Shown: piece after piece, positions 29,457 through 38,435 of the stretch | Layout: each line of letters starts with the position of its first letter | How positions within the stretch are numbered: the first letter of the stretch is position 1 | NCBI GenBank assembly: GCA_002104945.1 | Contig: MCFH01000024.1 | Coordinates: 248,001 to 312,000 of the forward strand | Direction of reading: 5' to 3' | DNA length: 64,000 bases | Origin: Piromyces finnis finn | Lineage: Eukaryota > Fungi > Neocallimastigomycota | Translations under genes and position numbers: made by a program | The notes under the pieces: generated by a model | Seen by the model: the letters and a program-made list of their open reading frames with translations, nothing else | Told to the model about the DNA's origin: nothing | Databases searched by the model: none

Positions 29457-31676
29457 ATGTTAAAGTATCCAATTCAAAATGTGTTAAAAAGTAGTGTACC
29501 AAAAAGTTACACATTATTAAATAAATCATCTGTAAATTTAATTTTTCAAAAATGTTCGAAACACCAATACAATGAAACATTCAAATATGATAATTTATTT
29601 CCAAAGAAAAATTCTGAACTTGACAAAACTCGCCCACTTATCAATATGAAAAATGTATTGTTAGATGGAACTCTTAAACCATTTAAAGGAAACTTTATTA
29701 ATGTTTATTCACCAATTTATTATCAAGGAACAGAAGAAAGAGCATTAATTGGTTCATACCCAGATATGACTCCTGAAGATTCAATTAAAGCCATTAAGGC
29801 TGCTAAAAAAGCTTTTAATAATGGAAAAGGAGGTGCATATTTTGATATAAATATTTTTTTTATGTTGAACCAATTTCTAATATATAATTTAAAATTAATA
29901 AAATAGAATGGCCAAGTATGTCACCATATGAAAGAATTAATGTAATGAATAAATTTTTAAAAGGATTGGAAAAAAATAAAATCGAAATAGCTAAATCAAT
30001 TATGTGGGAAATTAGTAAAAGTTGGGATGATTCTTTAAAGGAAGTTACCAGAACAATAGGTATTTATAGGATTAAATTATTTATTTTAAAGAAAATGAAA
30101 TTCAAAAATTGTATAAATTAAATTTGTTTTTACGCTATATATTATATAATAGAATATATAAAGGATACTATTAAGGCAGTTGAAGACTTGTATAAAAACA
30201 AAAATTTAAGAACTGTAAGTGGAGTAAATGCTTTTATTAAAGATTCTCCAATTGGCGTTATTCTCTGTTCCTCACCTTTTAACTATCCATTTAATGGTAA
30301 TTATTATATTTATATATATATATACTTTTTATATATTAATATTAATTATTTCTCTTTTTTATTTTATATATGAAAGAAACCTATACTACTTTAATTCCAG
30401 CTTTAATCATGGGTAATACAGCTGTAATGAAATTACCAAATTATGGTGTTGTATGTCACTACCTTACATATCAATTATTTAAAGATATTTTCCCTGCTGG
30501 TGTTATAAATATTGGTATATACACTGTACATTAATTTGAATAATATTCTTAATTCATAAATAATGAATTCTTATTGAAACCATATATATATATACAAAAC
30601 AAAAAACATTTGATTAAATAGTTACTGGTGATGGAAGAAAAACTCTTAAGCCAATTATGGAAACAGGTCTTGTTGATATCTTTGGTTTTATTGGTACATC
30701 AAAAGCTGCTTCAACAATTATTAAATATCATCCAAAGCCAAATGCTCTTAAATTATGTTTAGGTTTAGAAGCTAATAATGTTGGTGTTGTTTTGGGAGAT
30801 GTAGATTTAAAAAAAGCTATTCCAGAAGTTGTTTCTGGTTGTCTTTCTTACAATGGTCAACGTTGTACAGCTTTAAAGGTTTTATTAGTTCATGAAAATA
30901 TTTATGAAGAATTCGTTAAAGAATTTTCAGAAGCTGTTGATAAATTAACCCTTGGAATGCCATGGTAAATATAAGAATGATTATTTTATATCCTTTTTTT
31001 TTCGATTTAGTTTTAAAAATTCTAATTAAGATGAAACTGTATATATTAAAAAATAAGGGAAAAATCTGTAAAAATTACACCATTACCAGAAGAAAATAAA
31101 CCAAAATACATCGAAGAATTAATAGATGATGCAATCAAGTATGGAGGATCAATTTGCAACAAAAAGAAAGGTGGCGTAATTGATAGATCTATTGTATCAC
31201 CAATAGTTATTAGAGATGCAAAACCATGCATGAGAGTTGTTCAAGAAGAACAATTTGGACCAATTACTCCAATTATGAAATGGTCAGATATCTCTGAAGT
31301 TCAAGAATTTGTAATGAATTCTAATTATGGACAACAAGCAGCAATTTTTGGAGAAAATCCAGATTTAATTGCTAAAGCAGTTGATTGTTTTGTCTACAAT
31401 GTTGGACGTGTTAATATTAATTCTCAATGTCAAAGGTAAAAACTTTATAAAAAAAAAAGAACTTTCAATCATTTCTTCATAATTAATTTATTAACATATA
31501 TTTTAAACAGAGGACCTGATGTTCTTCCATTTACTGGTAGAAAAGATTCTGCCCAAGGCACTTTAAGTGTAACTGATGCTCTTAAGGTATTCTCTATTCC
31601 AAGTGTAGTAGCTATAAAGTCTAAAGAAGCCGAATTATTTAATAAAGTTAGCCAAAAATCAAAATTCTTGAATTAA
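29457..31676 (+). CDS. gapN: NADP-dependent non-phosphorylating glyceraldehyde-3-phosphate dehydrogenase (GAPN, ALDH superfamily), 7 exons
   Basis: Motifs: [37 protein letters not shown], catalytic Glu in LGLEANN, catalytic Cys in [67 protein letters not shown]. Confidence 0.88.
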
Positions 31677-32106
31677 AATTTAATGATAAATTCATTAAAA
31701 AATTAATTAATATTTAATTAAAATTAATACAATTAAAATTATAAAATAATAACAATTATAAGTGTATCATTCTAAACAATTTTCAAACAAAATCTTCATA
31801 AAACAATTGTAATTAATTTTAACATTTCAACAAAATAATTTATGTATTTGAATAAAAAATGTATTAAATAATTATTAAAGTTAAAAGATTAAGATTAAAC
31901 TAATCCAATCATAATTTAAAATTCTGACCAATAATATTTATGATTACAATAATATAAAAATAAGTTTTTTTTAAAAATAGAATTGTTTTTTACTTCTCAT
32001 CAAAAAAGAAAAGTAAAAAAAAATAATTAATAATAAAAGAATATAATTATAAATATTATATTAAATATTATTAATTAAAAAAAGAGAAAAAAGTTATATT
32101 TATTTG

Positions 32107-32186
32107 TAATTTTGTGATGAATTTCGCTCCTTAATTTTTTATAATGATGACATTTTTTTATTTATCACCAAGATCTCTGAAAATTA
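32107..32186 (+). ncRNA. U24: Box C/D snoRNA U24 (snR24/SNORD24 homologue)
   Basis: Terminal stem TAATTT/AAATTA, box C GTGATGA (32114), C' ATGATGA and box D CTGA (32177). The D guide TTATCACCAAGATCT pairs over 15 nt (two G:U) with LSU rRNA AGAUCUUGGUGGUAG. As I recall it, the same 3' end occurs in yeast U24, which guides 25S Cm1437. Confidence 0.92.
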
Positions 32187-32279
32187 TAAATAAATATAAT
32201 TCAAATTATGTATTTATTAAAGTAATGATAAAGTTATTTTAAAAAATATATAATGAGTTAAAAAAAGGAACATTTTAAT

Positions 32280-32355
32280 TAAGATGATGAAGAATTTTTA
32301 CTATATTATAAGCAATTATATGATAGTAACTAATAAACTACAATTCTCTGATTTA
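32280..32355 (+). ncRNA. Box C/D snoRNA, family unassigned
   Basis: Box C ATGATGA (32284), C'-like ATGATAG and box D CTGA (32348), with a weak TAAG/TTTA stem. The D guide AAACTACAATTC is complementary to GAAUUGUAGUUU. It lies between two clear snoRNAs. Confidence 0.7.
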
Positions 32356-32453
32356 TGAAAATAAGAAATAATATTTTTGATAAGTACTATCAAAATTAAT
32401 ATTTTTTATTAAATAAATAAAGAAAATAAAATGTTCTGGTTAAATTGTTTTTG

Positions 32454-32563
32454 TTATTTAATGATGGTTGTAATTTGCGTTTGAGTGATTATAAGTTGAT
32501 GACACAACGCCTAGTGTCGAATATCTCTTATAATAGATGAAACAATTGTTTAACTGAGAATAA
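32454..32563 (+). ncRNA. U16: Box C/D snoRNA U16/snR87 homologue
   Basis: Stem TTATTT/GAATAA, box C ATGATGG (32461), D' guide GTAATTTGCG followed by T-TTGA, complementary to SSU rRNA CGCAAAUUAC (yeast Am436/human Am484 site). Also C' TTGATGA, internal hairpin GACAC/GTGTC and box D CTGA (32554). Confidence 0.88.
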
Positions 32564-33015
32564 TAAAAACAAAAAATTAAAATTTTATTTTGTTATATAT
32601 TGAAAATGTAGAATATATATTAAAAATAAAATTTCAAATAAAATATTTAATTTAAAAATTATAAAAAACAAAAAATTGTGTAATGAAAGTTGTGAGTGTA
32701 TAGTGAGATGATTTTTGTGTGTTAAGTGTAACGAAAGTATGTTGTACTTTTTTTTTAGTTATTAGGTTAAATGTTTGGGGAAGAGGGATTAAATATAAGG
32801 TTACAAAAATGTATGAAAATTTGATTAATTATAAGTGGTGAATTATTAATAGACAAACAATAAAATTTTTAAATATTATCTTTGATATTGTAATAATACT
32901 CTAAAAATAATTAAAATATTATTCCCATTCGTTTAATCAACTTTAATAAAATATAAAATCAATAAAATTGTATCTATTCTACTTATTTATAATTTTTATA
33001 ACCTTTTTAGTGGAA

Positions 33016-38435
<5,420 letters not shown>

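Follow-up and report, generated by a model that had tools for sequence, protein, structure and literature searches.

We analysed a 64-kb stretch of DNA (64,000 nt; contig C150:248001-312000, hereafter the window) of the anaerobic gut fungus P. finnis, and searched for related sequences in the 56.46-Mb assembly of 232 contigs to which it belongs. In the window, which has a G+C content of 19%, a GAPN-type and an IDE-type gene, both assessed as separate exons and not as spliced proteins, are divided by a 1.3-kb spacer that holds a cluster of three box C/D snoRNA genes (sno1, sno2 and sno3). The cluster lies on the plus strand, like both of its neighbours, ~450 nt upstream of the IDE start codon. 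As the original prediction had proposed, the boxes, the guides and the Pfam matches on the flanking exons agree on this arrangement, whose elements are listed below.

Ends at 31676, plus strand: aldehyde-dehydrogenase (GAPN-type) gene, upstream of the cluster; Pfam Aldedh on its exons
32092-32112 and 32181-32201, plus strand: 5' and 3' arms of the sno1 external stem (21 bp, 2 G-U)
32108-32187, plus strand: sno1, a U24-like box C/D snoRNA, recognised by its boxes, its D guide and a sub-threshold SNORD24 match
32114-32120, 32144-32150, 32162-32176 and 32177-32180, plus strand: C box, C' box, D guide and D box of sno1
32122-32130, plus strand: non-canonical segment in sno1, at the usual place of the U24 D' guide; invariant in four taxa
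32281-32354, plus strand: sno2, a box C/D snoRNA with C box 32284-32290, D guide 32334-32346 and D box 32348-32351
32291-32303, 32307-32320 and 32320-32326, plus strand: candidate D' guide, GNRA-loop hairpin and C' box (AUGAUAG) of sno2
32445-32459 and 32558-32572, plus strand: 5' and 3' arms of the sno3 external stem (15 bp, 2 G-U)
32460-32557 (32445-32572 with stems), plus strand: sno3, a U16/snR87-like box C/D snoRNA, recognised by its D' guide and a sub-threshold SNORD16 match
32461-32467, 32481-32484, 32497-32502 and 32554-32557, plus strand: C box (last base G, not A), D' box (UUGA), C' box and D box of sno3
32470-32480, 32501-32518 and 32508-32512, plus strand: D' guide, hairpin and extra-pairing element of sno3
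From near 33016, plus strand: first coding exon of the M16 peptidase (IDE-type) gene, downstream of the cluster; Pfam Peptidase_M16_M on its exons

From box to box, the gaps between sno1 and sno2 and between sno2 and sno3 are 103 and 108 nt, and from stem to stem they are about 95 nt, the spacing given at the outset. The cluster is unannotated, as had been noted, and a search of the fungus's own genome found it to be single-copy, with no paralogues. No promoter or terminator of the cluster was identifiable. A G+C-richer (G/T-richer) block at 32660-32790 was considered as a fourth RNA and rejected, its conservation being at the level of the spacers (61% column identity across L128, L144 and L154); lying upstream of the IDE start, it is probably the IDE promoter or 5' UTR and not an RNA gene.

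Sequence evidence for the three RNAs

We scanned the window on both strands for a C box followed by a D box at a distance of 45-125 nt, a terminal stem no shorter than 4 bp and complementarity to the fungus's own rRNA, this last being an exact 10-nt complement that adjoins the D box or follows just after the C box. The scan returned exactly three candidates, namely sno1, sno2 and sno3, against a mean of 0.06 matches in 100 Markov-shuffled windows, which indicates that the cluster is real and far from chance expectation. All three RNAs carry the boxes of the class (RUGAUGA C, CUGA D) joined by a terminal stem, the C box of sno3 deviating in its final G. Terminal stems had been part of the original prediction and are indeed present, although those of sno1 (21 bp) and sno3 (15 bp) are far longer than was implied, while that of sno2 spans only about 4 bp.

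A search of the whole window against Rfam gave no match at the gathering score. When the 901 nt around the cluster were searched permissively (E up to 10), sno1 matched SNORD24 (RF00069) at 30.8 bits (cut-off 41; E = 0.0053 in this 901-nt search) and plasmodium_snoR17 (RF01592) at 30.9 bits (cut-off 51), and sno3 matched SNORD16 at 17.9 bits (cut-off 45) and Afu_514 at 15.1 bits (cut-off 39). The matches expected to U24 and U16 families are thus found, at sub-threshold scores. The sole match of sno2, at 20.5 bits, was a partial one in its 5' half to the nematode family ceN106. In very A+T-rich DNA such motifs might also arise by chance, without any functional RNA behind them, and this reading would be in keeping both with the empty Rfam search at gathering score and with those regions (D' in sno1 and sno2, D in sno3) for which no target better than those of shuffled sequence was found. 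We nevertheless consider it hardly credible: shuffled windows produce next to none of the matches that here number three and are clustered on one strand, all three predicted targets correspond to sites known to be methylated in other eukaryotes, and conservation in sister fungi is much higher in the RNA bodies than in the spacers.

Guides and predicted rRNA targets

Guides were compared with the rRNA of P. finnis itself, for which one repeat of the rDNA on contig C153 was taken (L004) and delimited with Rfam.

L004 178-1981: SSU rRNA
L004 2230-2384: 5.8S rRNA
L004 2609-6148: LSU rRNA

The repeat unit, of ~8.5 kb, also contains a 5S rRNA gene (L004 6514-6632), which lies on the minus strand, opposite to 18S-5.8S-28S. 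As the criterion for the class we used at least 10 nt of rRNA complementarity ending beside a D or D' box, and guides of 15 bp (sno1), 13 bp (sno2) and 11 bp (sno3) were found. Target nucleotides were assigned by the D+5 rule, by which the nucleotide opposite the fifth base upstream of the D or D' box is selected.

The D guide of sno1 pairs with LSU 1589-1603 over 15 bp, comprising 13 Watson-Crick and two G-U pairs, and D+5 falls on C1593, the predicted equivalent of yeast 25S Cm1437. The D guide of yeast U24 directs C1437, and Arabidopsis 25S C1447 is likewise listed under U24 (PMC8053127 Table 1). The segment at 32122-32130, in contrast to a canonical U24 D' guide, has no pairing to LSU 1601-1614, where the A1605/G1606 site lies; the second U24 guide is therefore missing, and sno1 is only half a U24. 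The U24 label given to this RNA thus holds for its D guide at a conserved LSU site, together with the sub-threshold SNORD24 match, and fails for the second canonical guide. Searches for another target of the D' region, in the rRNA and in the whole rDNA unit, gave nothing above shuffled sequence: at best, 32122-32130 matches rRNA in a run of 10 bp that includes one G-U, its duplex energies are like those of shuffled sequence, and the genome offers no exact 12-nt target elsewhere.

The middle RNA, described merely as new in the original prediction, is a genuine box C/D snoRNA, to which a predicted target can now be given. Its D guide, which ends one base before the D box, forms 13 Watson-Crick bp with LSU 142-154, and D+5 points to U145, which in LSU domain I is the first U within the motif GAAUUGUAG. 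This nucleotide is the equivalent of Arabidopsis 25S Um144, and its local context, A-U-U-G, agrees with A143-U144-U145-G146 of Arabidopsis (PMC8053127 supplement), in which U144 is methylated with a MethScore of ~0.9 and assigned to SnoR36 (PMC8053127 Table 1 and supplement). The candidate D' guide of sno2 forms 13 bp (2 G-U) with LSU 179-191, only 25 nt from the main target, and this pairing, which 20 of 300 shuffles equal somewhere in the rRNA, may be a second interaction or an accessory one. A 5-bp hairpin lies between D' and C' of sno2; its GNRA loop is GCAA in three of the taxa and GAAA in one other. The terminal stem of sno2 is weak (2-4 bp), and nhmmer matches to this RNA are restricted to anaerobic-fungal contigs.

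The D' guide of sno3 pairs with SSU 434-444 over 11 bp (10 Watson-Crick and one G-U) and selects A438, the predicted equivalent of yeast 18S Am436, human Am484 and Arabidopsis A440, the last of which is listed under U16 (PMC8053127 Table 1). Hallmarks of snR87/U16 are a non-consensus D' box and a conserved extra pairing to 18S beside the target, the latter measuring 4 bp in snR87 and 11 bp in human U16 (PMC3116282). Both occur in sno3: its D' box is the non-consensus UUGA, and the element CGCCU at 32508-32512, located in the loop of the internal hairpin, is complementary to SSU 430-434, directly 5' of the target, and is invariant in five taxa. The U16/snR87 label is accordingly upheld by a D' guide at the conserved 18S site of the fungus's own rRNA and by the sub-threshold SNORD16 and Afu_514 matches. 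Upstream of the D box, the sequence of sno3 differs from taxon to taxon and does not match rRNA, as fits a single-guide RNA. Two other candidates were set aside for sno3: a D-region guide, of which none was found in this variable region, and 5.8S as a target via a GUGA D' box, a box that is not kept in L143 and L154.

Conservation of the cluster in anaerobic fungi

Using single exons as protein queries, we retrieved exon-sized ORFs from JGI metagenomes and, with them, contigs of related anaerobic fungi. At least three further anaerobic fungi have the cluster in their metagenome contigs, with its order unchanged and its spacing similar. The three RNAs follow downstream of GAPN in L128-L134 (two variants), L143 and L144, of which L144 displays the full GAPN-cluster-IDE synteny, and in L154 sno3 lies upstream of IDE. 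The synteny comparison suggested with the original prediction thus gave the same order in sister fungi. In four distinct taxa, 87% of the columns are invariant in the bodies of both sno1 and sno3, compared with 34-44% in the spacers. With the external stem arms included, 270 of 355 columns are invariant in the bodies, against 125 of 332 in the spacers (Fisher p ~1e-24).

The external stems of sno1 and sno3 are also kept in every taxon, with the caveat that A-U-rich stems are easily formed in a genome of such low G+C content. That of sno1 has a 16-bp core in all four taxa and measures 16-18 bp in the relatives, and the fold of 32092-32203, which covers sno1 and its external stem, has z = -4.2. 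The sno3 stem measures 14-17 bp in five taxa and contains double changes: at one pair, two taxa have G-C and three have A-U, and a second pair changes from U-A to A-U. With 4-5 closely related sequences, this covariation is not statistically significant, as 64 of 500 shuffles reach the observed score.

A different picture emerged in another anaerobic fungus, represented by JGI and ENA contigs, which has close orthologues of GAPN (L135-L142) and IDE (L146-L153, L155-L157) that are not neighbours. The cluster is absent from both places, beside GAPN as well as beside IDE, which implies a rearrangement breakpoint exactly at the position of the cluster in P. finnis. These GAPN genes are taken as orthologues and not paralogues because P. 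finnis has a single GAPN. In L135, the gene next after GAPN is one for an Rpb1-type RNA polymerase, on the opposite strand. No U16-type guide or relative of sno2 or sno3 was found in 120 U24-bearing metagenome loci from diverse eukaryotes. On present data, linkage of U24, sno2 and U16 therefore appears confined to a subset of anaerobic fungi, and the suggestion that it may be lineage-specific agrees both with these loci and with the fungus that has the cluster beside neither gene.

Structure of the putative precursor

The spacers contribute further predicted structures, which together with those described above make up a 501-nt stretch that folds with z = -5.7 relative to dinucleotide shuffles.

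32205-32254, plus strand: hairpin in spacer 1 (~21 bp, 6-nt loop), predicted when the putative 501-nt precursor is folded
32267-32276 and 32428-32437, plus strand: arms of a long-range stem (10 bp) around sno2 and spacer 2

In the alignment, the arms of the spacer-1 hairpin are better conserved than the remaining spacer. Both arms of the long-range stem are found in the window, L128 and L144, and its 5' arm is absent from L143; the motif at 32428-32437 is invariant in all taxa, L143 and L154 included. An AGNN-capped hairpin of the Rnt1 type, considered in spacer 2, is not conserved and was dismissed.

The same layout might be produced by introns, with one snoRNA in each intron of a non-coding host, or all three in a UTR intron of IDE or GAPN, and release by splicing, debranching and exonuclease trimming. 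Such an origin would suit the strand shared by the cluster and both flanking genes, its proximity to the IDE start codon and the GTA-type and AG motifs scattered in individual taxa. GAPN introns in the window start with GTA followed by A/T bases, and across four taxa no GTA(A/T)-type 5' splice site or AG between the snoRNAs is conserved in position; the only invariant GT, that of the 32428-32437 motif, has T at +3, unlike those GAPN introns, and the exons would need to be 0-6 nt. Moreover, GAPN and IDE are both present in a fungus that has no cluster next to either gene, which shows that neither of them contains it as an integral part. The splice-site comparison speaks against one intron per snoRNA more than against a single large intron. 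An intronic origin is unlikely in our view, and we favour the alternative in which all three snoRNAs are derived from one polycistronic precursor, which seems the likelier model because there are no conserved splice sites between the RNAs.

A candidate partition of U24

The second canonical U24 guide was found by a search of the genome at a separate locus.

Contig C156 557585-557660 and 557859-557934, minus strand: two tandem 76-nt box C/D snoRNAs (L162 1451-1526 and 1725-1800)

The D' guide of these RNAs forms 13 Watson-Crick bp with LSU 1602-1614 and points to A1605/G1606, the equivalents of yeast A1449/G1450, which are the second canonical target of U24. In their D guide, which looks like a decayed canonical U24 D guide, matches to rRNA do not exceed 6 bp, and neither RNA has a match in Rfam. 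In alignments, the C156 RNAs match two-guide U24s from the C box through the C' box, and sno1 matches them in its 3' half only. In addition, sno1 and the C156 RNAs share a 7-mer at corresponding places, within 32122-32130 in sno1 and as the 3' arm of an internal hairpin in the C156 RNAs, suggesting common descent through duplication followed by partition of the two guides. Taken together, sno1 and the C156 pair resemble the two half-function genes that a split of U24 would leave.

The second U24 guide is present in 86 of 125 metagenomic U24 matches. Among the U24 loci, L071 (JAAUYJ010022291.1, ~843-920) contains a U24 of reversed order, with a C1437-type guide before D' and an A1449-type guide before D, lying in an intron of what by eye seems to be a ribosomal protein S5 gene of a eukaryote with 52% GC. 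An 8-mer common to this locus and the D' region of sno1 was taken as chance. Tandem U24 copies, four in L050 and three in L104, occur within ~0.7-0.85 kb and resemble plant-type arrays.

Discussion

Given the boxes, guides, stems, conservation and single-copy status of these genes, we think it very probable that three box C/D methylation-guide genes form an unannotated cluster at this locus, present once in the genome of an anaerobic gut fungus and most likely expressed as one precursor. A full-text literature search found no description of snoRNAs in Neocallimastigomycota.

For methylation, co-transcription and the processing route with its enzymes, we infer the following scheme. A single precursor transcript would be made, in which each unit occupies its own stem-closed domain and the long A-U external stems of sno1 and sno3 bring together their C and D boxes. 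Endonuclease cuts in the spacer hairpins, followed by exonuclease trimming to the snoRNP, would then yield the mature RNAs. Each RNA would assemble with fibrillarin/Nop1, Nop56, Nop58 and Snu13, and each guide would pair with pre-rRNA so that a 2'-O-methyl group is placed opposite the fifth base upstream of D or D', the predicted sites being LSU C1593 (sno1), LSU U145 (sno2) and SSU A438 (sno3). At A438, the 5-bp accessory pairing beside the target may help sno3.

With these assignments, the rRNA map of an early-diverging fungal phylum gains three predicted methylation sites, and the fungus seems to carry a guide for a site, LSU Um144, documented so far in plants. To our knowledge, the equivalent site is not methylated in yeast or human, and we know of no 2'-O-methyl group so near the 5' end of yeast 25S or human 28S. 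The middle RNA may thus be an ancient guide lost in the yeast and human lineages, or it may be convergent with SnoR36. The presence of the two U24 functions on separate genes is of use for the study of how rRNA modification evolves. More tentatively, and with appreciable doubt, one can propose that anaerobic gut fungi partitioned an ancestral two-guide U24 into a C1437-type RNA (sno1) and an A1449/G1450-type RNA (C156), and that they retain a plant-type guide for LSU Um144. If this were true, the partition of U24 would be a clean case of duplication and subfunctionalisation of a guide RNA, and a Um144 guide absent from yeasts and animals and retained here would make this methylation ancestral to eukaryotes and not plant-specific.

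Comparison with known systems

The RNAs described here are additions to known snoRNA families in a little-studied phylum and leave knowledge of the box C/D mechanism unchanged. Like U24/SNORD24 (yeast snR24), sno1 has a D guide directed at the LSU cytidine that is universally methylated (C1437 in yeast, C1447 in Arabidopsis), a similar size and a consensus C' box. U24 is intronic in ASC1 of yeast and in RPL7A of vertebrates; sno1 differs in lying in an intergenic cluster and not in an intron of either gene, and in scoring below the Rfam gathering cut-off. In having the C1437-type guide only, it is alike to Plasmodium snoR17 (RF01592).

With U16/SNORD16/snR87, sno3 shares the D' guide and 18S target, the accessory element beside the target, an internal hairpin and the lack of a second guide, and its UUGA D' box is the same as that of the Aspergillus Afu_514 consensus. 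It differs from that family in an accessory pairing of just 5 bp, in a C box that ends in G and in scores below the Rfam gathering cut-offs. In addition, sno3 belongs to a three-gene cluster, whereas snR87 stands alone in yeast and vertebrate U16 lies in an intron of RPL4, and we know of no long external stem, such as the 14-17 bp stem of sno3, in the U16/snR87 families. The middle RNA, whose predicted target nucleotide is also that of plant SnoR36 (SnoR8, AtsnoR36), would work like this plant guide.

As a same-strand snoRNA cluster, the locus has an arrangement that is common in plants, yeasts and protists. Its genes lie on the same strand ~100 nt apart, like those of the polycistronic clusters of plants, yeast (snR72-78 and snR190-U14), Plasmodium and Dictyostelium, and this spacing, without evident internal promoters, would imply a common precursor. 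No AGNN-capped Rnt1-type stem-loop is conserved in the spacers of the cluster described here, which instead has long A-U stems around sno1 and sno3, together with long spacer hairpins.
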